From Diplonema japonicum (lineage: Eukaryota > Protista > Euglenozoa: Diplonemea), in NCBI GenBank assembly GCA_964019335.1, contig OZ025667.1, positions 620,001-684,000 of the forward strand: a stretch of DNA of 64,000 nt, given 5' to 3'. The notes below the pieces were generated by a model. It ran no database searches. It was not told where the DNA came from and saw only the letters and a list, made by a program, of their open reading frames with translations. A program made the translations under genes and the position numbers. Positions 46,610 to 64,000 of this stretch are shown piece by piece (the first letter of the stretch is position 1; each line of letters begins with the position of its first letter).

Positions 46610-49600
46610 ATGTCAACTCTAGAAGCCATCCAGCAGAACAACACCTTAATTGTAGTGAAAGCGGGTGGCTTTGAGCTCCGTTTTCTCATCCTCACAGCTC
46701 CATCACCATCAAACCTTTCACTTTACATAAAAGTATGTAGGGAATAAAAATTAAAAAGATCGCGGACGGCAGGATTTGAACCTGCGCGGGCAGAGCCCAA
46801 TGCATTTCGAGTGCACCTCCGTAACCACTTGGATACGTCCGCTCGTGGATTTTTGCGCTTCAAAAGACCAGTACCTCATAGATGAAACCTGCAGCTGGTT
46901 GTAATTTATTTATTTTGAGGCGCGGAATTGGGCGTGGGACATGGCGTGACAAGGCGAAGGTCAAGGAGGTAAACCAACTCATGACCGAGTCGAAGCGCGC
47001 GGCCTGGGGTGAGATGGCGGCTGACCTCAGTCGGAGCAAGGACCTCGGGTCTGCGTTTAGGGCGGTGAAGAAGCTGGACGACACCGCAGACCGCACCTTC
47101 CCATTCTCGAGGGGAGGTTCGTGACGGACAAGGCGAAAGCCGACCGCCTGGGGGCTCACTTCGGCAAGCTCTACGGCCAGGGTGGTGATGGGGACGCGGC
47201 GGACGTAGCTCCTTCGACGAACGTGCTTGGGTGCCACGCCTTTACGGTGTATGATCTCACCCGCGGTCTGGGAAGGATGAAGACACGCAGTGCAGCGGGT
47301 GATGATGGCATCTTCGCGGAGATGCTTCTCCACCTCGACTAGCCCTCGCTCGGGGTTCTACTTCTGCTCCTCAATCGCTCATGGCAGGCGGGGATTGTGC
47401 CGGGTGCCTGGAAGAAGGGGGTGATTGTTCCAGTGGCGAAGGCAGGGAAGGACGCCACGTTGCTTGCATCGTACCGTCCCATATGTCTCACTAGCTGTCT
47501 TTGTAAGCTGCTTGAGAGGATGATAGAGGAGAGGCTTACCTTTCTCCTAGACTCTAGCGCGTCGGGCGTTGAGAGTCTCCACGACAGCCAGGCTGGCTTC
47601 AGGAGGGGCCGCTCCACGGAGGAGCAGGTGGCGTCCCTGACCGGGTGCCTGTCGAGGAACAAAGACAGTCGGCGTCTGTCGGCTGCCCTGCTGTTTGACT
47701 TCTCATCTGCGTTTGACCTGGTTCAGCACGAAGCTCTCTTGGGCATGATGCGGAGGAAAGGGATCCCTGAGCCCTTCGTCGAATGGACGCGCTCCTTCCT
47801 CTGCGGTCGTACGGCGGCGGTCACGGTGGGTCGTTCGCGAGGGTCGACGACGAAGGTGAGGAGAGGGGTGCCCCAAGGGTCTGTGCTGGGACCCGTCCTT
47901 TACACCATCTACGTCGACGAGCTAGCCAGGTTGCTGGTTGGGATGGCGGACCTGTCGGTTCTTTATGCCGACGATGTTGCGGTGGTGGTCTCAGCCGGGC
48001 AGGGCGACCTGGCTGGTCTTGAGCGAGGGGCCCAGGCTGTGATGGACGCGGTTGAGGGCTGGTGTGGGAGACGGGGCATGCTGCTGAGCTCCAGCAAGTC
48101 GCAGGCAGTGTGCGTTCCCTATCAGAAGCGGCTTAATGTCTACTTCTCTTCGTCGCGTGTCCCGCTTTGCCCGGGGGCCTTCCAGGACCCTGTCCTTAAT
48201 CTTGGGGTTGGGGTCTGTGGGACCTTGTCTGGCGTCCGTGAGCTGTCTGGCTTTCGGGTCGTGGAGGCGGGTGGCAAACGGTCCTTCGACATTCCCGCCG
48301 CCATCCGGAGGTCCGACATTGGTTACATGGCGGCTCGCCCCTTGCCTCTATGTGGGTCGGCGAAGTATCTTGGGGTCACTGTAGACTCTGGGCTCACGTT
48401 TGACGAGCATGCGGGGGATGTCCTGAGGAGCGCTGACAAGAGGCTGAGGGTACTAAGGCTCCTGTCGGGCACGACCTGGGGGTGCAAGAAGGCCACGCTC
48501 CGATCTCTGTACCTCACGTACGTTCTCCCGCTACTCCGGTACTGCATGGGTGTTTACTTTGCCAGGCTCAGGGACAGCAGGGTGGAGGAGCTTGTTGGGC
48601 TCCACCAGAGAGCGGCGGTGCTGATCTCGGGTTGTTGGCACGGCTCGGGCACGGCGAAGGTTGTTGCTGAGGCAGGTCTGCTACCCCTCCGACAGATGGC
48701 TGAGGGAGCTGCGGCGGTGTTGACGGCGAAGTCGTTCTGCTGGAGGACCTCCCCGGTTCACCGCGAGGTCCTTGAGCAGAAGCGGATGACCGGTATGGGC
48801 AATGGGTGGCTGCGTGCGGGTATCCTTGCGCTACGACGCTGCGGACTGCAGGGGTGGACGACGCAGGAAGGCTTCAGGAAGTACGACACCTTCGAGCTAC
48901 TGACTGCCTCGCCCAAAGTAGCACCGTGGCATGCGATCCTGGTGGAGTTCAGAACTGCCCTTCCCGGCAGGGTCACGCGTTCGTCGCCGGACGTGGATAA
49001 GCGGAAGGCGGCCGTGGAGGCTCTGGCTGCCCTTCCACCGGGTATCCATGCCTATACGGATGGTTCTGTCGTACGGGACCGCCAGAGGTGGAGGGGCGGC
49101 GCCGGGGTCTACTTGCAGCTCCCCCGCCCCCACGAACCCGTGTCCGAGAGCTTCGGCGTCAGCAATTTCTGCTCTTCCTTTCGGGCGGAGGGTCTGGCTG
49201 TCAAGGTGGCTCTGGACATGGTGGCCGCGCTCCGGAGCGAGCACCCCACGTTGGCAGACAGCCGGCTGTCGATCTGTACCGACTCGCTCTCTCTCCTTGA
49301 TCAGCTGAGGGCAGGTCCTTCGCGGCAGAGGGAGAGGCTCGACCACGAGACCTGGGAACTGCTGGTGGCCGCGGCACGTGCACAAGGTGCACCAGTCATT
49401 CTCCAGTTTGTGCCGTCCCACTGCGGGGTTCCTGGCAACGAGGCGGCAGACAGGCTGGCCGGGGAGGGCACGAAGCGCGAGCTGACTCGCCCCTCTCTCG
49501 ACTACAGGTCGGTCAGGGCCCTGGTCCGTCGCCAGATTCAGCAGAGGTCTGCGGTCATTGTCGGGGAGGTGGCCCCGAGATACGCGAGGGCCACGGGGCT

Positions 49601-52600
49601 CCGAGCGGCGTGCTTCCCCCAGTCCCTCCCCAGGCTAGCGGAGACGGTCATCTCGCGGCTGAGGGTAGGGCACTCCGCTCTCTTCTTCGGCTTCCTGCAG
49701 GCGGCTGGACCGAACAGGAAGAAGGCTGAGCTCAGCTGTCCAGCGTGTGGAGCACAGATGTCCAGGGAGCACGTTGTTGGGGGGTGCGCTGTGGTTGGAC
49801 GGGGTTCGCTCGACGCTCCCAATGGACGCCCCTCGCTGGTGGAGTGCCTGTCAAAACGCGTGACGCAGGTATTCACCCTCATCGCCGACTCTGGCTTGCT
49901 TGACTGGGCCAGATCCGGGGTCTTCACGTCGCCGTCTGCGGCAACGGCAGGTACCGCTGCCCCTTCGTTCATCCCGCCGGCTGTCTCCCTTGACGCCGGC
50001 CCTGCGGCCCCCGTGTTGCGCTGAAGTGAGTAGGGTGAGATCAACATTTCAATTCTTTTAGTGCTTACGTTCCCTTCCCCTCTCTTCCACTCCCTCTCAT
50101 CCTTTTCTTTATCATCATCCGGCGTCTGGCCTTTCTCTTACCAGTATGCCCGTCCCCTTTTAAACTTTTAAATTTTTAAAATTAACATCCTCTTGTTATC
50201 GTGTGCCCTGACATTGTAGTCAAAAACGGATGGCCCGGCCTACTCTGAAGTTGCCCAGATGAGTCCTCTCATCTTCGCACGAACGAGTGTGGTACGGCCA
50301 TCCCCTCCCCCCGCCTGCCGGAGTGCAGCGGGGAGAGCAAATACTTCCCCTATCATCCCCATGCGCACACGCACACTCGCTTCCCCTTTTGATTTTGAGA
50401 GATTTTACTCTCACCCTTTCATGTTTCGCTCAATGGAGCAAATCCCTCTCGAGGGGGCGACCGGGGCCAGTTCCGGTCACCAGAGGTCCCAGTTGAGAAA
50501 AACGACGAACTGGGGTCAAGGTCCCCGTCCGAGTCACGTAGGTCTACGCGGCTTGGAATTAAAGTAATTCAGCCCTCTTCGGCTGTTCCAAACAGGTGCA
50601 CGGGTTGGCGGAGTCCACAGCTCCATCTGATTGCAGAAGAACTGGTCTTCGCCCTCCCTGTAATATTTCCATGCTTCCCTTCACCTTTCCCCTTCCCAGG
50701 TGTTGCTCCCCCATGGTGGCACCTATTGGTATTTTGAAGAAAAAAAAAAATTGGGCGCCAACGATTCTAAAGCTACAGTTTCTGTACTTTATTGGGAAGG
50801 CTTAAAAAAAAAAAAAAAAAAAAAAAAAATGTCAAGTGACAAAATGACGAAGCCGAGCAAGGCGGGCGCCTCCAAGGGGCCCCTACCGGACGGGAGCGAG
50901 CCCGACCAAGACCCGCCGCAGCTAGTGCTGCAAACCACCGAGGTGGTGATCAGAAAGACCCCCCCCGAGACGACCCCCAAGACGAAGCCCACCCGGAAGC
51001 ACTACGACGCAGTCGTAGCCCCGCTTGCCCCCAAGCCCACGTGGGCGGCCTTCATTGCGCAGGCTGGACTGGGGAAGTCGATGAGGTTCGACGGTGTCCT
51101 AGGCACCATCGTAACCACAGGGACTCCCCCTCTTCAGTCCTACTCAGTGAGGGACGGAGACACTACCCATAAGGTGGTGTTCGAGGAGCAGAAGGGATCC
51201 TTTAAAAGGAAACTACCGGGTGGGTCTCGTAGAGGGACCAAAATAGACTTCCGCAGGGAGTTCGGGGGGGCGAGCTGGTCGCAGGTGTGGGAGCTGGCCG
51301 ACGAGAAGGAGGGGAGGAAGAAGAAGGCGAGAGAGGAGAAGGGGGCCAAAGCCGCAAAAAGGAAGGCCGAGGCCAGGGAAAGAGAGGAGAAGCTGGAGGC
51401 GAGGATCCAGGCGCTGGAGAGCGCCGAGAAGGAAGAGGGAGGCGGGATGGAGGACGACTGGGGCTGGAGGGAAGCCATGGACAGGCGGATTGCCGAGTTG
51501 GAGCAGGCGAGGGAACAGGCCGGGCTGTGGGAGAAGGCGTGCGAGAGGAAGGTGGAAGAGGTGGAGATGAGAAGGGTGCGTACGGACGAGAGGACTGAGG
51601 AGCTGAACAGGAGGGTGGGCCTGGTGGAGGGCGAGCTTGGTGGCCTGAGGGGGGAGATTTCTTCCTTGAAGGCGTCATCGGAGAGGACGGAGCGGTCGGT
51701 GGAGGAGCTGAAGCAAGGGATGAACAGATTACTCATCCACTTGACTACAGGAGCCCCCCCACCAGGAACCTCCGAGGAGGCAGACGGGTCCCCAGAACAG
51801 AGGGGACACGTGCCGTCCACCGATGGCGCTGACGAGGGGACTGACACCCCAGACTGCCCCAGGCACGCTGCGACACCGGAGAGAAAGGGTACCGTAGCAC
51901 CTTTATGCTACGACACCCCCCCACCAGCCGAAAGGCTCGTAGGAGTTGCCACAACAAGGCAGACAACCCTACACACCACCCCCTCGCAGACAACGCCCCT
52001 GCACAAGGTGAACCCTCCCGTAAAAAGGAAGGTTGAAGGCCAGTACTAAGGGCCGTGCAATCTCATTCAACACCCCTTTCACCCCCTTTCCCACACCGTC
52101 TCTCACTCCCTGTCCCTACTCCCAAACCCCCAACACTACACCCCATCTAAACGAAGATGAAGTACTACCCAGCCTCTCAAGCCCTGGAAGCTGGGGTGAC
52201 CGCAAAGGCAGCACATCATCACCACATCACCATCCCTCATCTTTCCCTCTCTCCACGCACAATTCCTCCCCAAACAAGCACTCACAAACTCCCGTCACCG
52301 GTGACGAAGTATTACCCAGTATCCAAAGGCCTGGACCTAGGGGTGACCACACAGGCAATCTTCACATTCGCAGAAATCCCGCAGCCAGCGGTCCGCACGG
52401 AAAACACTTACTGAGCTGCGGGGACATAGAAGCGAACCCCGGTCCAACCACCGAAAAGACAACAAGAGTTGAACACTCTCTCCCTCCCGTCCCCTCTACT
52501 TCCTCTCTCTCACAGGCACACTCCAACACAGCACCACCACCCAACAACATCAACGTACTGTCTCTCAATGTCAGATCCCTAACGGTGAGCACCACAGCGC

Positions 52601-55600
52601 AGCTGCTGAAGGGCATTGAGACACACAACATCGACGTGCTCCTACTCCAAGAGACTTTCCTGAGGCCGTCGAAAGATATAACCGGAGTCTTCACTGGGTT
52701 CAAGGCATACCGCCGAGACCGAACACGACCGGTGAAAAGAGGAAAGCAAATCAGCGGAGGGGGTCTCGTCACACTGGTCAGAGAATCGATACCGTCGAAA
52801 CAGATCGAAGTTCTTCAGAAACCCAGCGACGTGACGGAAAGACTCGACGTAGAGATCTCGCTGCCCAACCGGAAGCCGTACAGACTCGTCAACCTGTACC
52901 TGCCTCCGACAACGGGTAGAGACGGCGACGACAGACCACCCCCCGAGAAATATTTCCGCCCGGCAGAGCTGCCTCATGACAGTTACACCATCATCGCCGG
53001 TGACATGAACGCCCACCACACGATGTGGGACAAAAGGGGCACTCCGAATAAGCTGGGAGAAATACTGCACAGCTGGATGCTGCGATGGGGCTACAGCACA
53101 TGGAACAAGAGCAGCGAAGCCACGATCCTGAACCCGTCAGGAAACCCAACCTCTCCGGACATGGTAATGAGCGGCGCAGAGTTCGACAAATCTTCTTGGA
53201 GGACGTTGCCAGCAATGGGCTCAGACCACGTTCCGATGTTCTTCAGTCTGAGAGGGGGAGTCAGCCAACCGACCAGAAGAGTACTCTACTCTTGGGGGAA
53301 GGAGGCAAGGAGCGCGTACAGGGAGACGATGGAAGAAAAGTGCAGCAGGCTGCTCAGGGCCAGAGACCCGATAAGGCTAAACGCTGAGTTTCGCACACTT
53401 CTTCTATCGGCAACCGAATCGTGCGTCCCCAGGAAAGGACAGAAGAAAGGGAAGGTTTGGTGGAACGACGAGATTGACGCACTCGCAAGGCGACGAAGCA
53501 CACTGAAGGCGAAGCTGTTGTCCGAGGATCACGACGGGAACGACGAAGACCTGGCACGTCTAGCGGCGATGGAGGCTGAGCTGGACAGGGCGATAACGAG
53601 CGGGAAGCAGGCTGCCTGGGGCGACTACACCAAGAAGTTGTCCAAGGACGGAAACCTGACGCAAGCCTTCTCGGTCATCCGCAGATTCGACGGTCGCAGC
53701 GAGAAGCCACCAATAGCCCCGCTCCGACGAGGAAACGGTATCGCCACCACCGACAGGGAGAAGGCCAGTGTACTCGTCGAACACTACGCGAGGGCCTGCT
53801 CCCCAAGGACGACTGCCAAGTCGGAGGAAGTGATCACCACCATCAAGAAGGACGCGAAGCCCGGGACAGACAACGACTTCCCCCTGGTAACGAAGGACGA
53901 GCTGGACTCGGTGCTGCGAAGGCTGAAGAAGGGCAAGGCTCCGGGCCCAGACGGCATCTACAACGAAATGCTGAAGTACCTGGGACCGGTGGCCAGGGAA
54001 GTTCAACTCCTCCTCTACAACTCATCCCTCCAGACCGGTGTCGTCCCTGCCGAATGGAGGCGGTCTTCCATCATCCCCCTCATGAAAAAGGGCAAAGACC
54101 AATCCGAACCCGCCTCGTACAGGCCGATCGCGCTGACGTCAAACATCGTGAAGACGTTGGAGCGAATAGTCAAGGACAGGATGTGCTTCCTGCAGGACAC
54201 AGGACGGGTAAGGCAATTGCACACATCGCAGGCGGGTTTCCGGAAAGGGAGGTCCACGGAGGAAAACGTGCTGTACGCCGCCTCAAAGCTCAAAAGTGTC
54301 AGACTGAGCCAAGGTCTGGGGGGTCTCCTGCTGTTCGACTTCAAAGGAGCCTTCGACACAGTCTGGCACAAGGGAGTGATCGCAAAGCTGATAGGCGACG
54401 GATACCCTCCCAAGCTCGTGAAATGGATCACCTCTTTCCTCGACCAACGTAAAGCCTCCGTCTGTGTGAACGGGGAACACGGCTGCGTGAAGACAATGAC
54501 AGGGGGCGTACCCCAAGGCACCATCCTGGCCCCGCAGCTCTTTTCCATCTACGTCAACGACCTGGCCAGGTTGTACAGGAAGGCTGGAATCGACGCGGTA
54601 GTGTACGCAGACGACATAGCGATAGTGCTGGAGGCGGGGAGTCCTGCCGAGCTGAACAAGAAGGTGCAACGCGCGGTGAGCCTCACGGAGCGATGGTGCG
54701 AGACGTTCTCGATGAAACTGTCCCAGGAAAAGACAGAGTTCATGCCGGTGGAGGGACAGTTCTGGAACTCGCACGACAGTCTCGCAAACCTCATCAACGC
54801 CCGCTTCCCCTCGAGTGGGGCGAAAGTCAAGGTGGTACGCGAGGCTAAATATCTTGGCGTCACCTTCGACGAAAGCATGAACTTCCACGAGCATGTGCAG
54901 AAGGTGAAGGGAAAGATCAACAGCCGTCTTCGCCTGCTGCGCAAACTCGCCGGAACAAGGTGGGGCTGCCGCAAGCACACCCTAAGGACGCTGTACCTGA
55001 CGTACGTCCAACCGGTTCTGCGCTACTGTCTCGGTGCTTACGGCAACTTCGTGGGACATGCTGCTCTGGCCGAGTTCGACTCGCTACAATACACAGCAGC
55101 GAGGTTGATAACGGGATGCTTCGACAAGACTTCCGCGACGGTGACCAGGTCAGAGGCGGGCATCTGGGAGATTGAATCCTTGCTGGAACACGACACCCTG
55201 GTGCTCTACGAGAAGGCACAGCGTCAACCGGGGACGACAGCGGAGAAGGCAACAAAGATATCCGGGGGTCAGATGTGGTACGGGAAAAGCTGGCGAAACA
55301 CCGCGCTCGACTTGGCGAAGAGTCACGGGATGCCGGAACGCGAAGACCTACCACACCACTCAGTCACTCAGAGCGCAGACCTGCAGCTCCCTCCATGGGT
55401 CCAACCCAAAGTCCTGTTCCACCCCGACCTAGTCCGCAAGGTACACAAGAAGGACGAAAAAAGTCTCAAACTCCGAGCGGCCTTCGAATCGATCAGGAGG
55501 CACGGCATCCCAGATGTGATCGTCTACACCGACGGGTCAGTCACCGGACACAGGAACGGCGGTTCGGCAGCTGTGATAAGGATCGGGTCTGACACACCGA

Positions 55601-56403
55601 AGCAGGCTCGCAAGAGCGGAGGAGCAGTGACTTCGGCCTACCGATGCGAACTGAAAGCGCTGAACCTGGGGCTGCAATGGACACTGTACCATACCCGGAG
55701 ACAAGGTGTGACGACCGGAGTAGTGCTGCTGTGCTCGGACTCCCAGTCGGTGATCAGAAGACTGATGCAGGGCCACAGAGAGATGAGGCAGAAGGAGGAA
55801 CTGCTGGCTTGGAAATGGCTGGACGCGCTTGACCGCCAAGGCCTCTCCACCATCATCCAGTACGTTCCCGGACACTGCGGCCTACCAGGTAACGAGCAAG
55901 CCGACCGACACGCCAAACGCGCCGCAAAGGAGTCGACACCGGACGGACCGACGGACCTGATGACCACAAAGAGCCTCATCAAGAGGTCGGTGAACCGCGA
56001 CTGGGCAGCCTCGTGGGAGAAGACGGGTCGGGACAAGAAGTACCGAGAGGAGATCGGCGCGAGGTACCTCCCCTTGAAGGAACTGTCCTGCAGACACGAT
56101 GAGGTACAGATAACGAGACTGCGAACGGGCAGGAGCCACCTGACTTGCGGTTTCCTGTCGAAACCCGTCCAGAATGACTTACGTTGCCTCTCGTGCCATT
56201 CGATCCAGGACAGACACCATCTGCTGATCGGGTGCCCAGCTGGAGACAAGGTCCGCGAAGAGATCTTCGGGGATGACATCCCCACGACCACGAAGGAGAT
56301 GCTCACAATGAGGGTGAGTGAAACCGCCTCCTACCTGAAGAGGATGGACCTCATCTGAGACTCTCACGACCGCCGAGCCGCTGACCGCAATCGCAGGACG
56401 TAG

Positions 56404-56442
<39 letters not shown>

Positions 56443-57401
56443 AACAGAAAAAAGTGAACCAAAAAGTACTAGTGAACCCTCTCCCCCTCCCCCTGTGTTT
56501 CCCATTATTACCCTGTCGTGCACCCCAACTTCTGTCTTCACCTTTCCCCGCCCCTTCACACATCCCCCCGTATCATTTCCCTTTGTTTTGAATTTTCTAA
56601 GGCTCCGCCGCCCAACAAAGCTGGCTGAAGGGGATGCCTCCGTGCCAGTGTGCCGCTCGTGAGGGCGAGCACGGACGAGGTACCCCACTCCTCAAAAACC
56701 CGGAGGTTCGCCCGAAGGGTGCTGGCTTGGGAAGCGGGCTGGAGAGCTGCCGGGGTCACGGAGGTGGGCGAAGTCGCGAACACTGGAGCCCACGAACCGG
56801 CCCCACCTCCGTCCTCGGTACGTATGGATAGTTTAGCGGAAGTTTCAAGGTTATCACATTCCTTTCCTTTCCCCCTTTCGTTAGATACAGGGAGACCCTT
56901 GGTCCACCTGTTCTGTCCCCCCCCCCAGCCTTTGCTTCGCACGTCAGTGGTTCATTTATTATTATTTATTATTATTAAAATTGGGCGTGGGATCGATCGT
57001 GGTCTAGTTGGTTAGCGCATGGGGAAGCCTTCTAGTAGCGTCGGTTCAATTCTCCCAGCAGCCCGTTAGGCTAAGGCCGTCTCTGGAACAACTACCATGT
57101 CGGCGTGGGGCTGAACAACGCAGGCCGGACCTGAAGCGAAGTCGATATGGAAGCTGCTGGAAAAAAAAAAAAAATTGGGCGTGTAGCGGACGTATCCAAG
57201 CGGTTAAGGAGGTGCACTCGAAATGCATTGGGCTCTGCCCGCGCAGGTTCAAATCCTGCCGTCCGCGGTTTTTTTTTCTTCTGTTTTTTCTTTCTTCCAC
57301 TTCTGCAGGATTTGAAACGACATGGTGTTCAATCGCTTGTTCGCGTCTGTGCTCCGACATACAAGGAAGAAGTCGTGCGGAATCATGGCATTGAGGTTTA
57401 T
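46610..57401 (+). CDS. PRL/PTP4A-type protein tyrosine phosphatase, exons 1-2 (remaining exons beyond window)
   Basis: Exon 1 46610-46732 (MSTLE...RFLILTAPSPSNLSLYIK), donor GTATGT, acceptor CTGCAG, exon 2 57309-57401 (DLKRHGVQSLVRVCAPTYKEEVVRNHGIEVY), donor GTATGT at 57402. Matches PRL RFLIT..P....L..FIEELKKYGVTTIVRVCEATY. Confidence 0.85.
46761..46842 (-). tRNA. tRNA-Ser(CGA)
   Basis: Acceptor stem GCGGACG/CGTCCGC with G73, anticodon arm GTGCA-CTCGAAA-TGCAT, long variable arm, GGTTCAAATCC and a downstream T-run. Confidence 0.95.
46949..50750 (+). mobile_element. 5'-truncated non-LTR retrotransposon, family A (RT-RNase H-CCHC)
   Basis: YRPICL, QGSVLGP, YADD, YLGV, RNase H YTDGS/CTDS/HCGVPGNEAAD and CPAC..H...C. 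About 700-bp 3' UTR with poly(A); bounded by AATTGGGCG. Confidence 0.93.
50758..50794 (+). other. Retrotransposed spliced-leader (SL) exon relic
   Basis: CCAACGATTCTAAAGCTACAGTTTCTGTACTTTATTG contains the euglenozoan SL core ACAGTTTCTGTACT(T/A)TATTG. It is not followed by a GT donor. Confidence 0.9.
50829..52049 (+). CDS. Family B ORF1 (coiled-coil protein)
   Basis: ATG after an A-run about 35 nt downstream of the SL; long E/K/R heptad region. Confidence 0.75.
   Translation: MSSDKMTKPSKAGASKGPLPDGSEPDQDPPQLVLQTTEVVIRKTPPETTPKTKPTRKHYDAVVAPLAPKPTWAAFIAQAGLGKSMRFDGVLGTIVTTGTPPLQSYSVRDGDTTHKVVFEEQKGSFKRKLPGGSRRGTKIDFRREFGGASWSQVWELADEKEGRKKKAREEKGAKAAKRKAEAREREEKLEARIQALESAEKEEGGGMEDDWGWREAMDRRIAELEQAREQAGLWEKACERKVEEVEMRRVRTDERTEELNRRVGLVEGELGGLRGEISSLKASSERTERSVEELKQGMNRLLIHLTTGAPPPGTSEEADGSPEQRGHVPSTDGADEGTDTPDCPRHAATPERKGTVAPLCYDTPPPAERLVGVATTRQTTLHTTPSQTTPLHKVNPPVKRKVEGQY
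52033..56358 (+). CDS. Family B ORF2 polyprotein: 2A peptide, APE endonuclease, RT, RNase H, CCHC
   Basis: GDIEANPGP; SLNVRSL, LQET, GDMNAH and SDH; QGTILAP and YADD; YTDGS, CSDS and HCGLPGNEQAD; CLSC..HLLIGC. Uninterrupted for 1441 codons; real start unknown. Confidence 0.93.
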   Translation: MKASTKGRAISFNTPFTPFPTPSLTPCPYSQTPNTTPHLNEDEVLPSLSSPGSWGDRKGSTSSPHHHPSSFPLSTHNSSPNKHSQTPVTGDEVLPSIQRPGPRGDHTGNLHIRRNPAASGPHGKHLLSCGDIEANPGPTTEKTTRVEHSLPPVPSTSSLSQAHSNTAPPPNNINVLSLNVRSLTVSTTAQLLKGIETHNIDVLLLQETFLRPSKDITGVFTGFKAYRRDRTRPVKRGKQISGGGLVTLVRESIPSKQIEVLQKPSDVTERLDVEISLPNRKPYRLVNLYLPPTTGRDGDDRPPPEKYFRPAELPHDSYTIIAGDMNAHHTMWDKRGTPNKLGEILHSWMLRWGYSTWNKSSEATILNPSGNPTSPDMVMSGAEFDKSSWRTLPAMGSDHVPMFFSLRGGVSQPTRRVLYSWGKEARSAYRETMEEKCSRLLRARDPIRLNAEFRTLLLSATESCVPRKGQKKGKVWWNDEIDALARRRSTLKAKLLSEDHDGNDEDLARLAAMEAELDRAITSGKQAAWGDYTKKLSKDGNLTQAFSVIRRFDGRSEKPPIAPLRRGNGIATTDREKASVLVEHYARACSPRTTAKSEEVITTIKKDAKPGTDNDFPLVTKDELDSVLRRLKKGKAPGPDGIYNEMLKYLGPVAREVQLLLYNSSLQTGVVPAEWRRSSIIPLMKKGKDQSEPASYRPIALTSNIVKTLERIVKDRMCFLQDTGRVRQLHTSQAGFRKGRSTEENVLYAASKLKSVRLSQGLGGLLLFDFKGAFDTVWHKGVIAKLIGDGYPPKLVKWITSFLDQRKASVCVNGEHGCVKTMTGGVPQGTILAPQLFSIYVNDLARLYRKAGIDAVVYADDIAIVLEAGSPAELNKKVQRAVSLTERWCETFSMKLSQEKTEFMPVEGQFWNSHDSLANLINARFPSSGAKVKVVREAKYLGVTFDESMNFHEHVQKVKGKINSRLRLLRKLAGTRWGCRKHTLRTLYLTYVQPVLRYCLGAYGNFVGHAALAEFDSLQYTAARLITGCFDKTSATVTRSEAGIWEIESLLEHDTLVLYEKAQRQPGTTAEKATKISGGQMWYGKSWRNTALDLAKSHGMPEREDLPHHSVTQSADLQLPPWVQPKVLFHPDLVRKVHKKDEKSLKLRAAFESIRRHGIPDVIVYTDGSVTGHRNGGSAAVIRIGSDTPKQARKSGGAVTSAYRCELKALNLGLQWTLYHTRRQGVTTGVVLLCSDSQSVIRRLMQGHREMRQKEELLAWKWLDALDRQGLSTIIQYVPGHCGLPGNEQADRHAKRAAKESTPDGPTDLMTTKSLIKRSVNRDWAASWEKTGRDKKYREEIGARYLPLKELSCRHDEVQITRLRTGRSHLTCGFLSKPVQNDLRCLSCHSIQDRHHLLIGCPAGDKVREEIFGDDIPTTTKEMLTMRVSETASYLKRMDLI
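56990..57174 (+). mobile_element. tRNA-derived SINE
   Basis: A box TGGTCTAGTTGG, B box GGTTCAATTC, no closable cloverleaf, body enclosed by CCAGCAGC/GCTGCTGG, poly(A) and flanking direct repeat AATTGGGCGTG. Confidence 0.8.
57186..57267 (+). tRNA. tRNA-Ser(CGA)
   Basis: Same cloverleaf as 46761-46842 with 2 differences in the D arm; T-run terminator follows. Confidence 0.95.
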
Positions 57402-57489
57402 GTATGTACCGAGTTGTTTAGCTTTGTTTCCATTTATTATTTTGTGCATGGATTTTAAAGAAAGGCTCGATTGAAATAATGTGAAATAA

Positions 57490-60400
57490 TACGCACACAC
57501 GCGCCAAGCAATTGTAAAGGACAACGCCGCCGCCAGGGCGAAGCGCACGCGCGAGGAGGTGGAGAGGAAGCGCGCAGAGGGGGTCACGCCGGTGGTGACA
57601 CCCTCCCCCGGGCAGGGGAAGAAGGCGGCCAGAAGGGCCAGACAGAAGGCAGCAGCTGCTGACGCTGCCACCGCCGCCGCTTCGGGCTCCGACGACTCTG
57701 TCGTCTTAATTAGCGAGTCGCCGGGCGTTGCCACCTCGTTCACGGTCGACACGCCAGAGGTCAGGAGGGCGAGGATGAGGACTGCTGCCGCCGACACCAC
57801 TGCTCCTGCACCTGCTGCTGCCAACACCACTGCTCCTGCACCTGCTGCTGCCGACACCACTGCTCCTGCACCTGCTGCTGCCGACTCCCCTGCTCCTGCG
57901 CCTGCTCCAGCCTCTACTGCAGCCGTGTGGTCTACTGCCGTCCTCACTGCCGCTGCCTGCGACACCGCCCTCCCCATGTCGGACTCTGACACCGACGAGA
58001 AGAACACGGCCCCCGCTCCCGCACCGGCCCCGGAGCCTCACTGGGATCTGGTCCCCGACACGTGGGACGCCCCCATCTACACCAACACTGCTCCCCCTGA
58101 GGAGGTGCCCCGCGCCGTCGTCGCTCTCGACGACCTCCAGCAGGTGGACGCGATTCGCACTGCGAGGCCCACGGCCTCCCTGACCTTCGTCCTCTTGACG
58201 GAGGTTGCCGGTTCGACCACCCCATGCACCGTCATCGTACTCGCCGGCCAGCGTGCCGTGCACAAGGCCGTGCACACCTTCTCGGTCGGGTCGAACCCCC
58301 CCTCCTACACCCCACTCGCTTCTTTTGATGGCGGCTCTGAGGTAGTGTACGTCAGCGTGAAAGCTGACAGCGTGAACGCGGCGAAGGCCAGGGTTCGGGA
58401 CCTCGTCGCGACCCAGGGCGTGGCGGTGGAGGAGCAGGCGATCTTCCGCCCGAAGAAGATCGACGGGAACGAGCCGCGGGCGCGGCACTGGAGCCACGAG
58501 GTGGGCCTCGGGCGACGGCTGCATGGTCAGGACGACCGAGCGGCGCGGGGGGTACACCTACGTGCCCATCGTAGCGGAGGGGAGGGCGGAGGCCTTCCAG
58601 CTGGCGAAGGCACTGGGCGGGTTGTCCCTGGGGGTGGCCCATCGCAAGGGTTGGACCGTGAGGTGCCTGCCGGAGACGGAGCAGCGTCTGAGGGAGGCCC
58701 TCGCCAAGCAGAGGACAAAGCGTCGGTACCTGCTCACCGGAGCCCCGCTATCTGTTACCAGGGCAGCCTTCGACGGGATGATGGACCACATCGGTTGGAA
58801 GCCGTCGTCCATCAATCCGTGGTCATCTCCACCGAGCTCGGTTGCCCCTCCGCCACTTGGCACCGTGACTCCGGTCTCCTCTGCGGCTTCCCCGACCACG
58901 ACACCTCCCCGTGACTCCCAGAAGAAGAATCCCGCACCGGAACCTGAGGTCCCGGCGCTCCTCGCGCTGATCCAGTCGATGCAGGCGACCATCGACGGTC
59001 TGCAGGCGACGGTCCGCGACCTCCAGGAGAAGATGGCAGCGTCACTTGGCGCGCCGGCGCCATCTGCAGACGGTGCTGGGCGGACGGCAGTTGCTGGGAA
59101 GGGCAAAGGCGGCAAGGCAGGGTCCAAGGCAGGGACGAAGGGGCACCAGGCGCAGGGCGTAAGCACGCCAGGCCCCTACCCGACATCGACGGAGCAAGGG
59201 GGCGGAAGGGGACGCGCCCAGTCGCTGGCTGGCGACTCTGCTACCCCCAACGGGGTCGGCCGTGGACGGGCAGCCTCTGTGGGTCCGGCCCCCGCCCCTG
59301 CCAATTGAAGGGGACCCGCTGAGCAGGGGGGGCGGCAGATCGACGACCACGCCCCCTCTCCTGGTCTCCCGCGCATACAGCCGAGGAGACACCTTCCACA
59401 TCACTTGTACGACGTCCTCCCTTCCTTGATCCCTTCCTTACTTGAACGGATGTCGGCCAGGGACCTGCTGGGGCTGCTTGGGCTGGTTGAGACGAACCCC
59501 GGTCCACCTAAGAAGCTCCCACCCCCGAAGCCGAAGGGACTCAGGGTCCTGTCCTGGAACTGCAACGGTCTTGCCGCCAAGTGGTCAACCGTGTCCTACC
59601 ACGCTGTCCTACTGACGCTGGATATCATTATGATCCAGGAGACACACCTTAGGGAGGGGCATGAGACACCATACCTGCCTGGATACACGTCCTACAGGAG
59701 GGACCGCACAACACCGGTGACGGACGGCTCTGCGACGAGAGGCGGTGGTGTCATCACGTATGTCCGTGACTGCCTTGCCTCGGAGGAAGCTCCTTTCGTA
59801 CTCCCTGAAGGTGACAGTGTCACTGAGCGATTAGACGTGAGGATCTCCTGTGTGAAGCGCGTCCCGGTCACCCTCTCCAACGTGTACCTCACGCCTGTGA
59901 GTATAAGCAGAGGAACAAGGGACCCCGAGTACCTACGGCCGGGCAGCCTACCTGTGGGGAAGAACACGATCGTTGCTGGCGACTTCAACGCACACCACAG
60001 CTCTTGGGATGCCAACCGACGAGCCGACGCGGGACTCACCGCCACGCGTTCTGGACCTGGTGGTGGGACGTTGTGCGGAACTGGAGCCGAGGACGTTGGG
60101 GACGTGGGGCTCTGATCACAGCCCGGTTTCCTTCCACTTGCCGCTTGAGGACGCCTACTGCTCGGAGCGCCCCTGCCCTACCTGGAACTTCAAAAAGGCC
60201 AGGTGGGACGACTTCTCCGCGGCCGCTGCCGCCCTTCTGACCAAGATCGACACGAAGGGTCACATTGACTCCTTCACGAAGGAGGTAACAGAGGCTCTTC
60301 TGCATGCAGCTGACGACCACATTCCGCTTTGCGGAGTGCGACGAGGCCCGACCCCCTGGTGGACGGCCGAACTCGAAGACGCTTTCGAAGAACGGAACGC

Positions 60401-63400
60401 CCTGCGGGATCGCTTCCTCAAGTCGGCTGAGACAGAGGATGACAGCGTAGCGGCGGTGTACAAGGCGAAGGTCAAAGAGGTGAATCAACTCTTGACCGAG
60501 TCGAAGCGCGCGGCCTGGGGTGAGATGGCGGCTGACCTCAGTCGGAGCAAGGACCTCGGGTCTGCGTTTAGGGCGGTGAAGAAGCTGGACGACACCGCAG
60601 ACCGCACCTTCCCATTCTCGAGGGGAGGTTCGTGACGGACAAGGCGAAAGCCGACCGCCTGGGGGCTCACTTCGGCAAGCTCTACGGCCAGGGTGGTGAT
60701 GGGGACGCGGCGGACGTAGCTCCTTCGACGAACGTGCTTGGGTGCCACGCCTTTACGGTGTATGATCTCACCCGCGGTCTGGGAAGGATGAAGACACGCA
60801 GTGCAGCGGGTGATGATGGCATCTTCGCGGAGATGCTTCTCCACCTCGACTAGCCCTCGCTCGGGGTTCTACTTCTGCTCCTCAATCGCTCATGGCAGGC
60901 GGGGATTGTGCCGGGTGCCTGGAAGAAGGGGGTGATTGTTCCAGTGGCGAAGGCAGGGAAGGACGCCACGTTGCTTGCATCGTACCGTCCCATATGTCTC
61001 ACTAGCTGTCTTTGTAAGCTGCTTGAGAGGATGATAGAGGAGAGGCTTACCTTTCTCCTAGACTCTAGCGCGTCGGGCGTTGAGGGTCTCCACGATAGCC
61101 AGGCTGGCTTCAGGAGGGGCCGCTCCACGGAGGAGCAGGTGGCGTCCCTGACCGGGTGTCTGTCGAGGAACAAAGACAGTCGGCGTCTGTCGGCTGCCCT
61201 GCTGTTTGACTTCTCATCTGCGTTTGACCTGGTTCAGCACGAAGCTCTCCTGGGCATGATGCGGAGGAAGGGGATCCCTGAGCCCTTCGTCGAATGGACG
61301 CGCTCCTTCCTCTGCGGTCGTACGGCGGCGGTCACGGTGGGTCGTTCGCGAGGGTCGACGACGAAGGTGAGGAGAGGGGTGCCCCAAGGGTCTGTGCTGG
61401 GACCCGTCCTTTACACCATCTACGTCGACGAGCTAGCCAGGTTGCTGGTTGGGATGGCGGACCTGTCGGTTCTTTATGCCGACGATGTTGCGGTGGTGGT
61501 CTCAGCCGGGCAGGGCGACCTGGCTGGTCTTGAGCGAGGGGCCCAGGCTGTGATGGACGCGGTTGAGGGCTGGTGTGGGAGACGGGGCATGCTGCTGAGC
61601 TCCAGCAAGTCGCAGGCAGTGTGCGTTCCCTATCAAAAGCGGCTTAAAGTCTACTTCTCTTCGTCGCGTGTCCCGCTTTGCCCGGGGGCCTTCCAGGACC
61701 CTGTCCTTAACCTTGGGGTTGGGGCCTGTGGGACCTTGTCTGGCGTCCGTGAGCTGTCTGGCTTTCGGGTCGTGGAGGCGGGTGGCAAACGGTCCTTCGA
61801 CATTCCCGCTGCCATCCGGAGGTCCGACATTGGTTACATGGCGGCTCGCCCCCTACCTCTGTGTGGGTCGGCGAAGTATCTTGGGGTCACTGTAGACTCT
61901 GGGCTCACGTTTGACGAGCATGCGGGGGATGTCCTGAAGCGCGCTGACAAGAGGCTGAGGGTTCTAAGGCTCCTGTCGGGCACGGCCTGGGGGTGCAAGA
62001 AGGCCACGCTCCGATCTCTGTACCTCCGTACGTTCTCCCGCTACTCCGGTACTGCATGGGTGTTTACTTTGCCAGGCTCAGGGACAGCAGGGTGGAGGAG
62101 CTTGTCGGGCTCCACCAGAGAGCGGCGGTGCTGATCTCGGGTTGTTGGCACGGCTCGGGCACGGCGAAGGTTGTTGCTGAGGCAGGACTGCTACCCCTCC
62201 GACAGATGGCTGAGGGAGCTGCGGCGGTGTTGACGGCGAAGTCGTTCTGCTGGAGGACCTCCCCGGTTCACCGCGAGGTCCTTGAGCAGAAGCGGATGAC
62301 CGGTATGGGCAATGGGTGGCTGCGTGCGGGTATCCTTGCGCTACGGCGCTGCGGACTGCAGGGATGGACGACGCAGGAAGGCTTCAGGAAGTACGACACC
62401 TTCGAGCTACTCACTGCCTCGCCCAAAGTAGCACCGTGGCATGCGATCCTGGTGGAGTTCAGAACTGCCCTTCCCGGCAGGGTCACGCGTTCGTCGCCGG
62501 ACGTGGATAAGCGGAAGGCGGCCGTGGAGGCTCTGGCTGCCCTTCCACCGGGTATCCATGCCTATACGGATGGTTCTGTCGTACGGGACCGCCAGAGGTG
62601 GAGGGGCGGTGCCGGGGTCTACTTGCAGCTCCCCCGCCCCCACGAACCCGTGTCCGAGAGCTTCGGCGTCAGCAATTTCTGCTCTTCCTTTCGGGCGGAG
62701 GGTCTGGCTGTCAAGGTGGCTCTGGACATGGTGGCTGCGCTCCGGAGCGAGCACCCCACGTTGGCAGACAGCCGGCTGTCGATCTGTACCGACTCGCTCT
62801 CTCTCCTTGATCAGCTGAGGGCAGGTCCTTCGCGGCAGAGGGAGAAGCTCGACCACGAGACCTGGGAACTGCTGCTGGCCGCGGCACGTGCGCAAGGTGC
62901 ACCAGTCATTCTCCAGTTTGTGCCGTCCCACTGCGGGGTTCCTGGCAACGAGGCGGCAGACAGGCTGGCCGGGGGAGGCACGAAGCGCGAGCTGACTCGC
63001 CCCTCTCTCGACTACAGGTCGGTCAGGGCCCTGGTCCGTCGCCAGATTCAGCAGAGGTCTGCGGTCATTGTCGGGGAGGTGGCCCCGAGGTACGCGAGGG
63101 CCACGGGGCTCCGAGCGGCGTGCTTCCCCCAGTCCCTCCCCAGGCTAGCGGAGACGGTCATCTCGCGGCTGAGGGTAGGGCACTCGGCTCTCTTCTTTGG
63201 CTTCCTGCAGGCGGCTGGACCGAACAGGAAGAAGGCTGAGCTCAGCTGTCCAGCGTGTGGAGCACAGATGTCCAGGGAGCACGTTGTTGGGGGGTGCGCT
63301 GTGGTTGGACGGGGTTCGCTCGACGCTCCCAATGGACGCCCCTCGCTGGTGGAGTGCCTGTCAAAACGCGTGACGCAGGTATTCACCCTTATCGCCGACT

Positions 63401-64000
63401 CTGGCTTGCTTGACTGGGCCAGATCCGGGGTCTTCACGTCGCCGTCTGCGGCAACAGCAGGTACCGCTGCCCCTTCGTTCATCCCGCCCCCGCCGGCTGT
63501 CTCCCTTGACGCCGGCCCTGCGGCCCCCGTGTTGCGCTGAAGTGAGTAGGGTGAGATCAACTTTTCAATTCTTTTAGTGCTTACGTTCCCTTCCCTTCTC
63601 TTTTCTTATGTTATCATCATCATCCGGCGTCTGGCCTTTCTCTTACCAGTATGCCCGTCCCCACTTTTAAATTTTTAAATTTTTAAAATTAACATCCTCT
63701 TGTTGCCGTGTGCCCTGACATTGTAGTCAAAAACGGATGGCCCGACCTACTCTGAAGTTGCCCTGATGAGTCCTCTCATCTTCGCACGAACGAGTGTGGT
63801 ACGGCCATCCCCTCCCCCCGCCTGCCGGAGTGCAGCGGGGAGAGCAAATACTTCCCCTATCATCCCCATGCGCACACGCACGCTCGCTTCCCCTTTTGAT
63901 TTTGAGAGATTTTACTCTCACCCTTTCATGTTTCGCTCAATGGAGCAAATCCCTCTCGAGGGGGCGACCGGGGCCAGTTCCGGTCACCAGAGGTCCCAGT
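57490..64000 (+). mobile_element. Near full-length but disrupted non-LTR retrotransposon, family A (continues past window)
   Basis: Frameshifted ORF1 to 59308, 2A-like GLVETNPGP, APE (SWNCNGL, IQET, GDFNAH, SDH), RT, RNase H and CCHC to 63540. Nearly identical to 46949-50510. Confidence 0.93.
57784..57905 (+). repeat. 30-bp tandem repeat (about 4 copies) in family A ORF1
   Basis: GCTGCYGCCRACACCACTGCTCCTGCACCT encodes AAADTTAPAP. Confidence 0.85.

Follow-up and report, generated by a model that had tools for sequence, protein, structure and literature searches.

Stacked long interspersed nuclear elements upstream of tRNA genes in the diplonemid Diplonema japonicum

How can several retroelements come to lie one behind the other immediately upstream of a single tRNA gene? 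This question is raised by a locus of the diplonemid Diplonema japonicum (Euglenozoa), situated in a stretch of 64,000 nucleotides of contig OZ025667.1 (assembly GCA_964019335.1, positions 620,001 to 684,000 of the forward strand), hereafter called the window, to whose own numbering all coordinates refer. In a preliminary description made from the letters of the window alone, the array was attributed to three independent target-primed insertions, at one nick upstream of a tRNA-Ser gene, of two unrelated long interspersed nuclear elements (LINEs), A and B, and of a short interspersed nuclear element (SINE). Our analysis indicates with good confidence that three serial events of target-primed reverse transcription took place at one site, and that they belong to the activity of a guild of LINEs with APE, reverse transcriptase (RT) and RNase H domains, which integrates at a fixed position with respect to tRNA genes. 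The junctions, the target-site duplications, the common orientation, the fixed position, the independence from target sequence and the participation of several families are displayed by the loci described below.

A pattern search of the window found AATTGGGCG at exactly the four sites already recognized in the preliminary description, 46926, 50749, 56979 and 57173, all on the forward strand, and shuffled sequence gave a mean of 0.69 matches, four being reached in 1 of 100 shuffles. Read directly, all four copies coincide with element junctions, and the array runs from unique DNA through T1, LINE A1, T2, a spliced leader joined to LINE B, T3, an insert of 184 bp and T4 to the dinucleotide TA and tRNA-Ser(CGA) (Table 1). 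A1, B and the 184-bp insert share one orientation, with their tails pointing to the tRNA-Ser. The AATTGGGCGTG part of T4 (57173-57183) ends 2 bp before the tRNA gene, a distance that had been noted from the letters and that junction reading, ARAGORN and Rfam now confirm. The boundaries and orientation proposed for a truncated LINE A and a full-length LINE B were upheld as well; the label of SINE given to the third insert was not, since no other full-length copy of it exists in the genome.

Table 1. Features of the tRNA-Ser array and its surroundings in window coordinates (positions beyond 64000 are window-equivalents).
Feature	Position	Strand	Evidence
Host-gene intron, GT...AG, 10,576 nt, holding both tRNA-Ser genes and the whole stack	46733-57308	+	GTATGT at 46733, CAG at 57306-57308
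Second, divergent tRNA-Ser(CGA)	46761-46842	-	ARAGORN; Rfam tRNA 58 bits
T1, 5' target-site duplication of LINE A1 (AATTGGGCGTG)	46926-46936	+	
LINE A1, 5'-truncated (RT, RNase H, C-terminal CCHC)	46937-50748, poly(A) 50740-50748	+	Pfam RVT_1, RNase_H
T2, 5' target-site duplication of LINE B (AATTGGGCG, 9 bp), between the poly(A) of A and the spliced leader	50749-50757	+	
Spliced leader of 37 nt, reverse-transcribed, attached at the AG acceptor in the 5' untranslated region of B	50758-50794	+	
LINE B, full length	50795-56978	+	Pfam, translations; at least 42 genomic 3' ends
T3, 5' target-site duplication of the chimeric retrocopy (AATTGGGCGT, perhaps + G), after the (TTA)nAn tail of B	56979-56988/9	+	
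Chimeric non-autonomous retrocopy, 184 bp	56989-57172	+	
T4, tRNA-proximal target copy (AATTGGGCGTG + TA), tRNA positions -13 to -1	57173-57185	+	
Targeted tRNA-Ser(CGA), followed by T-run terminator	57186-57267	+	ARAGORN; Rfam 59.8 bits
Host exon between two retroelement-bearing introns	57309-57402	+	Run X5 contig with spliced flanks
LINE A2, second family-A copy, frameshifts	57514-64000, on to 64245	+	Pfam, copy comparison
Intron-containing tRNA-Tyr(GTA), 2.1 kb beyond the window end	66118-66205 (L160:2118-2205)		Read by eye

Contigs of four public runs were compared with the window for read support. The junction from poly(A) through T4 to the tRNA is bridged by a contig of run X3 over 57130-57500, and the internal junction of the 184-bp insert by contigs of runs X1 and X5 over 57041-57174 and 57046-57137, these independent runs coming from three studies. 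An assembly artefact, or a segmental duplication of tRNA-plus-element modules, might be invoked on the grounds that near-identical repeats are hard to assemble and that T3 lies in a simple TTA repeat with thin read-contig coverage. Against this stand the two junctions recovered from the runs of three studies, and the tRNAs, flanks and tail lengths, which differ by locus and exclude the copying of one module; this explanation is barely credible.

The arrangement recurs across the genome. For each of A and B, 30 genomic 3' ends were fetched and the sequence following the tail was inspected, tRNAs being called by ARAGORN with its intron option and the window's own copies being excluded. A same-strand tRNA begins 5-13 nt behind the tail in ten of the 29 other A copies (mode 12, five of the ten at 12 nt or more) and 3-11 nt behind it in 12 of the 29 other B copies (10 detected by script, loci L057 and L062 by eye). 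In total, 22 of 58 copies stand 3-13 nt upstream of a tRNA, and the tRNA-directed placement seen at this one locus thus holds genome-wide. The abutted tRNAs are those for Asp, Lys, Phe, Ser, Ile, Glu, Val, Gln, Tyr, Leu, Thr, Met, Pro and Gly, at least 14 isoacceptor types being represented. In most of the other copies, a similar short spacer leads to a second LINE, which is entered at its 5' end or somewhere inside, and such copies are read as members of stacks. Stacks were confirmed at a tRNA-Gln and at a tRNA-Tyr. At four loci (L028, L029, L041 and L066), an (AC)n...(GT)n inverted repeat surrounds ATGAAAATGTA about 20 nt after the LINE tails; this recurrent sequence could represent a further small-RNA gene or else the 5' terminus of a different element.

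The spacers between tail and tRNA are unlike AATTGGGCG and unlike each other, and the other insertion targets of A and B, such as CGGCGGTTGTAA, CTAGAAAACACA, TATATCCGCGTA and TAGAATCTGAA, are unrelated. Because the flanks are unrelated across loci, targeting is by position and not by sequence; and because the spacers of other copies are unrelated to AATTGGGCG, the latter is the target-site duplication of this particular locus. It is not part of the element termini either, the other A and B copies having quite different flanks. That description had left a choice between tRNA- or Pol III-directed (RNA polymerase III-directed) and sequence-specific targeting, and it is the tRNA-directed option that holds genome-wide. 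The sequence-specific option would call for an endonuclease that recognizes AATTGGGCG(TG), with the adjoining tRNA a mere coincidence. The four exact copies bounding the inserts are what such an enzyme would leave; the motif, however, is found nowhere else in the window, the other targets of A and B are unrelated to it, and target-site duplication fully accounts for the repeats, so that this idea deserves next to no credence. Specific targeting of AATTGGGCG was accordingly rejected, as other A and B sites at tRNAs have unrelated sequences.

A sample of tRNA genes drawn independently of the transposons gives a similar picture. From the 63 best tRNA matches in the genome, the 150 nt upstream of 60 were taken, of which 54 could be oriented. 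An A-run of at least six ending no more than 16 nt upstream was present at 19 of these 54 tRNAs, each run following a recognizable LINE 3' end; six families of tails, A, A', B, E, F and G, are represented. Tails of the TTA type stand before two further tRNAs, which brings the occupied share to 19-21 of 54, or roughly 35-39%, while random positions in the transposon-rich window show an A-run alone in 6% of cases. A LINE tail in the opposite orientation was seen at none of the 54 sampled tRNAs. Targeting of tRNAs extends to at least five or six families of LINE tails; the preliminary description, which had suggested that it was common to two LINE families and a SINE, was right as to several LINE families, and had their number too low and the SINE misnamed.

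The geometry of insertion is precise on one side and loose on the other. In the window, the targets extend from -13 to -3 relative to the tRNA for A1, from -13 to -5 for B and from -13 to -4/-3 for the small insert. On contig 17, a full-length A copy is flanked on both sides by CGGCGGTTGTAA, which corresponds to -12 to -1 of a tRNA-Ile, and upstream of it lies a B copy with a duplication of 8-9 bp starting at -15. On contig 42 (loci L181/L182), a full-length A copy at a tRNA-Lys(CTT) has a 27-bp duplication that reaches from -12 to +15, and an older A' element ends with its tail at the identical -12 position, so that one nick was shared by two families. The 27-bp duplication also leaves a 5' fragment of the tRNA, its first 15 nt, upstream of the A copy. 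The first nick, on the bottom (template) strand, is precise and the second variable, as expected for target-primed reverse transcription. The original proposal, that each of the three inserts arrived by a separate target-primed event at the same nick before tRNA-Ser, is sustained by the genome-wide copies and by the -12 nick used by two families at tRNA-Lys.

Since the duplication restores the flank of the tRNA, the site becomes available for a further insertion. The TG after AATTGGGCG, found only in the original sequence, is present in T1, and A1 is the outermost element; A1 therefore preceded B. The tail of B ends 9-11 nt before the Pol III-like head of the small insert, which was inserted either last or before B, and in the latter case its head was the landing pad for B.

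Random insertion followed by survival only in harmless places, such as the upstream regions of tRNAs, would fit a gene-dense genome in which introns and tRNA flanks serve as refuges, and the stack does lie within an intron that is still spliced. Selection of this kind cannot yield single-nucleotide precision at -12 or -5, the complete lack of opposite orientations among the 54 sampled tRNAs, or the re-use of a nick by different families; moreover, copies that are 99-100% identical are too young for much purging. We regard it as very improbable.

A second stack follows in the window. LINE A2 lacks about 100 nt that follow (GAAAA)n in other A copies, its 5' truncation point at 57514 showing a GTAA microhomology to the flank. 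Its tail is succeeded by remnants of tails, the target TGTAAGCCTCTC and more LINEs in truncated form; the row closes with tRNA-Tyr(GTA), which ARAGORN misses without the intron option. The repeated target here, TGTAA|GCCTCTC, spans -5 to +7 and includes the first 7 nt of the tRNA. A2 is the distal member of this second stack, anchored at tRNA-Tyr(GTA). The caveat attached from the outset to a family-A copy near 57490, which has no motif at its 5' junction, is resolved: the copy is 5'-truncated and part of the tRNA-Tyr stack.

The divergent tRNA-Ser(CGA) gene on the minus strand lies 83 bp to the left of T1, and direct reading of the flank between them (46843-46925) revealed no insertion or tail upstream of that gene. 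Both tRNA-Ser(CGA) genes differ at 2 positions and only one of the pair is occupied; without the inserts they would be spaced by about 96 bp, a spacing that recalls the divergent tRNA/small-RNA gene pairs of trypanosomatids.

What, then, is the small insert? Its head (56989-57070) equals the first 82 nt of a Pol III-like unit of about 134 nt, present in seven copies at five loci with two tandem pairs (loci L002-L008, e.g., L005:1447-1582 on the minus strand). The unit ends in TTTT and carries box A- and box B-like motifs; ARAGORN found no tRNA in it, nor did Rfam find a tRNA, an HDV-like ribozyme or another family at E ≤10, and its fold has a z-score of only -1.6. LINE tails lie 5-17 nt upstream of the unit at three of its five loci. 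The insert itself has a box A-like TGGTCTAGTTGG and a box B-like GGTTCAATTCT, and neither ARAGORN nor Rfam calls a tRNA or another family in it. Its 3' module (about 57088-57160) is found, with poly(A), at no more than two further loci, where it stands in each case behind another 5' sequence, and is followed by an A-run of about 12 that starts at 57161 and whose last two As (57173-57174) overlap T4. By direct reading, made without alignment, this module resembles the 3' end of neither A nor B; a genome search with the insert returned no LINE copies, and one with its 175-bp body returned no second full-length copy.

A SINE family was therefore discarded for this insert, its head (seven unit copies) and its tail module (two loci) never being found together elsewhere. 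The third element of the preliminary description turns out to be a single chimeric retrocopy, most readily explained by mobilization in trans with a template switch; at the most, it could belong to a tiny family whose heads vary. Chimeric retrocopies formed by template switching are known for L1-type elements, e.g., the U6-L1 chimeras. Like these, the small insert consists of the 5' part of a Pol III-type RNA and the 3' end of another polyadenylated RNA, is flanked by duplications and ends in poly(A); unlike these, it landed at a tRNA target specific to the LINEs, and its head may attract further insertions.

The LINEs themselves appear to be very recent. Copies within families A and B are 99-100% identical; A1, whose poly(A) is A9, is 98% identical to A2 from 46943 onward, and over its 3' 199 nt it agrees at 100% identity with 17 further copies in the genome. 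LINE B comprises a 5' untranslated region with an A26 run, a first open reading frame (ORF1, 50844-52049), ORF2 (52033-56358), a 3' untranslated region and a (TTA)nAn tail. Its intact ORF1 encodes 402 aa with a coiled-coil-like middle, as read from the translation, and its ORF2 encodes 1441 aa with a 2A motif, APE, RT, RNase H and CCHC (Pfam Exo_endo_phos, RVT_1 and RNase_H; motifs from the translation). ORF2 overlaps the end of ORF1 and has no ATG near its start. The 2A-type motif, GDIEANPGP, occupies residues ~128-136 (52414-52440) before the APE domain; a 2A motif is also present in L1Tc. In the frameshifted A2, Pfam detects APE, RT and RNase H.

The 5' ends read GGTAGGGAAGGCTT-An for B and (GAAAA)n for A, the GAAAA repeats of the latter standing before the ORF1 ATG in variable number, from 2 to more than 12. 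Rfam gave no ribozyme match at E ≤0.1 within 44-64 kb, and a Pr77/HDV-like 5' end of the INGI type was not found, the A 5' end lying outside the window. In database searches, the closest relatives of B ORF2 are proteins from EukProt transcriptomes (44% identity), besides distant LINEs from metagenomes or animals.

Over 800 residues spanning RT, RNase H and the C-terminal CCHC motif, the ORF2 proteins of A and B have 32% identity, and judging from these proteins the two LINEs, which had been called unrelated, are distant relatives. No similarity between their ORF1s was detected in the comparison, for which reason the determinant of targeting probably resides in the conserved ORF2 protein.

How the site is found is less certain. 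We propose that the guild of APE-RT-RNase H LINEs integrates at tRNA genes and occasionally at other Pol III genes, making its first nick on the bottom strand, the template strand of the tRNA, at about -12/-13, with a second class at about -5. The element always comes to lie in the orientation of the tRNA, with its tail beside it, and a second nick on the top strand between -7 and +15 gives duplications of 9-27 bp that rebuild the upstream flank of the tRNA. The regenerated target lets the next element land there and push older ones outward, and the chimeric retrocopy was probably mobilized in trans. The site is probably found via the Pol III transcription complex on the tRNA gene, be it through TFIIIB, TFIIIC or Pol III itself.

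Alternatively, the ORF2 protein might recognize the DNA of the tRNA gene directly, by binding box A/box B or the shape of the gene and cutting at a fixed distance without any Pol III factor. The targets have only the tRNA gene in common while their flanks differ; the targeted 134-nt unit and a degenerate tRNA-like gene both have box A/B-like motifs; and U6 genes are unoccupied (LINE tails upstream of 0 of 6), all of which agrees with direct recognition. Contrary to it, one of 14 5S rRNA genes, which are devoid of tRNA-type boxes, has an A' tail 8 nt upstream (locus L169), Pfam detects no DNA-binding domain besides APE and CCHC, and the precedents TRE5-A and Ty3 reach their targets via TFIIIB/TFIIIC (PMC5911963). 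On balance we consider direct recognition rather unlikely. The samples of 5S and U6 genes are too small to separate tRNA-specific from Pol III-general targeting. The 5S rRNA genes of this genome are dispersed, with 22 matches over many contigs instead of one array (loci L167-L180).

Several points weigh against integration guided by Pol III factors at a fixed position from tRNA genes. The counts for A, B and the tRNAs rest on subsets, namely the best-scoring candidates of genome searches, and about half of the examined copies have no adjacent tRNA within 1.5 kb, their membership in a stack being traced only for some. The gaps between tail and tRNA are bimodal, at about 5 and about 12 nt. Contact of the elements with a Pol III factor is putative, and so is a coincidence of the -12 nick with the Pol III start site. 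The rare occupation of U6 and 5S genes may mean that the signal is tRNA-type A/B-box DNA rather than Pol III transcription in general. Finally, no empty-site copy was found in the assembly by a pattern search allowing 2 mismatches. The empty-site check envisaged in the preliminary description was extended to the four runs, again without an empty allele or paralogue; no joint skipping the chimeric retrocopy was seen there, an absence that means little in Logan contig data.

The templates of these insertions can be traced from the 5' ends of the copies. LINE B of the window is headed by a 37-nt sequence read as the diplonemid spliced leader, whereas unspliced B copies begin with GGTAG|GGAAGGCTT. 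A start with the spliced leader at the AG is found in 5 of 11 full-length B copies (the window's included) and in 2 of 19 A copies; those outside the window are at loci L135, L136, L138, L140, L144 and L149. Because LINE copies begin with the spliced leader joined at the AG, trans-spliced Pol II (RNA polymerase II) transcripts serve, and often so, as transposition templates, which explains the continued activity of elements that have no recognizable promoter.

The genomic context offers a source of such transcripts. In a contig of run X5, the letters of 57309-57402 are preceded by those of about 46703-46732 and joined on to the downstream exon, with exon-like depth. The tRNA-Ser pair and the stack thus lie inside a GT-AG intron of 10.6 kb that is removed, and the next intron holds the second stack. 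A1, B and the chimera are all in the sense orientation of the host gene. Elements of this kind can be expressed from host transcription units such as their own intron.

A wider proposal, to which we lend slightly less than even belief, is that a diplonemid guild of distantly related, promoter-less LINEs reads the Pol III pre-initiation complex, nicks the template strand at the start zone (-12 or -5), rebuilds its landing pad and rides host Pol II units with spliced-leader capping. Targeting of tRNA genes would then have been invented independently in eukaryotes for a third time, Amoebozoa and Fungi accounting for the first two, and would be combined with a mode of expression undescribed for such elements.

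Among known systems, LINEs with tRNA-gene targeting have been described in dictyostelids as TRE5, TRE3, NLTR-B and NLTR-A (PMC5006619; PMC5911963). With these, the present elements share APE and RT, an A-rich 3' tail, target-site duplications, a similar distance to many different tRNAs and targets independent of the flanks. The closest precedent is NLTR-A of Dictyostelium purpureum, a non-LTR (lacking long terminal repeats) element with APE, RT and RNase H that is targeted by position and not by sequence, 2-6 bp upstream of tRNAs (Spaller et al., 2016, PMC5006619). NLTR-A is, however, an amoebozoan single family of 28 copies, whereas the euglenozoan system comprises at least five or six families, has -12 and -5 classes, occupies about 35-39% of the sampled tRNAs and forms stacks; the likeness is probably convergent. 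The preliminary description had named Dictyostelium TRE and yeast Ty3 as precedents and none in diplonemids; the latter statement stands, as no literature report of tRNA targeting was found for diplonemids, kinetoplastids or other Euglenozoa, and NLTR-A is the omission.

The TRE5-A and TRE3 elements of D. discoideum resemble the diplonemid LINEs in being aimed at tRNAs, in occasionally hitting 5S genes, in forming stacks by repeated insertion and in their presumed use of safe havens, and the ORF1 protein of TRE5-A binds TFIIIB (PMC5911963). They differ in geometry: TRE5 inserts ~48 bp upstream in the opposite orientation and has a zinc finger in place of RNase H, and TRE3 inserts ~100 bp downstream of the tRNA. 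The insertions of yeast Ty3 and the dictyostelid DGLT-A fall ~12-17 bp ahead of the 5' end of the mature tRNA, at the Pol III start site and in the zone of the -12 nick described here; in contrast to the LINEs, these two are LTR retrotransposons that use a TFIIIB-tethered integrase and no target-primed reverse transcription.

Within Euglenozoa, the ingi/L1Tc (INGI) elements share the host group, the order APE-RT-RNase H, an N-terminal 2A-type motif, a poly(A) tail and target-site duplications. Both A and B ORF2 have the INGI-type order with a C-terminal zinc knuckle, and B also has a separate ORF1. For INGI elements, no tRNA targeting has been reported (PMC12278014). A mobilome survey of 57 trypanosomatid genomes describes site specificity only for CRE elements in spliced-leader genes, and the genome paper of D. 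papillatum lists LINE-like genes without an analysis of their targets; the published genome of Paradiplonema papillatum counts 211 tRNA genes. The diplonemid system is a multi-family variant of known tRNA targeting in a new eukaryotic lineage, probably of independent origin, with a geometry of its own and a documented link to trans-splicing.

Targeting of tRNA genes is the textbook case of a safe haven in compact genomes; the only LINEs for which it is on record are those of dictyostelids. A euglenozoan system that is clean, shared by several families and, to all appearance, very recent, with copies 99-100% identical and intact ORFs, would be another independent origin. Its geometry is unlike that of TRE5, with the same orientation as the tRNA, a nick at -12 or -5 and duplications able to include the tRNA 5' end, and its insertions could be used to locate Pol III complexes and start sites in an organism about whose transcription little is known. 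As the relative Paradiplonema papillatum is transformable, the mechanism is testable.

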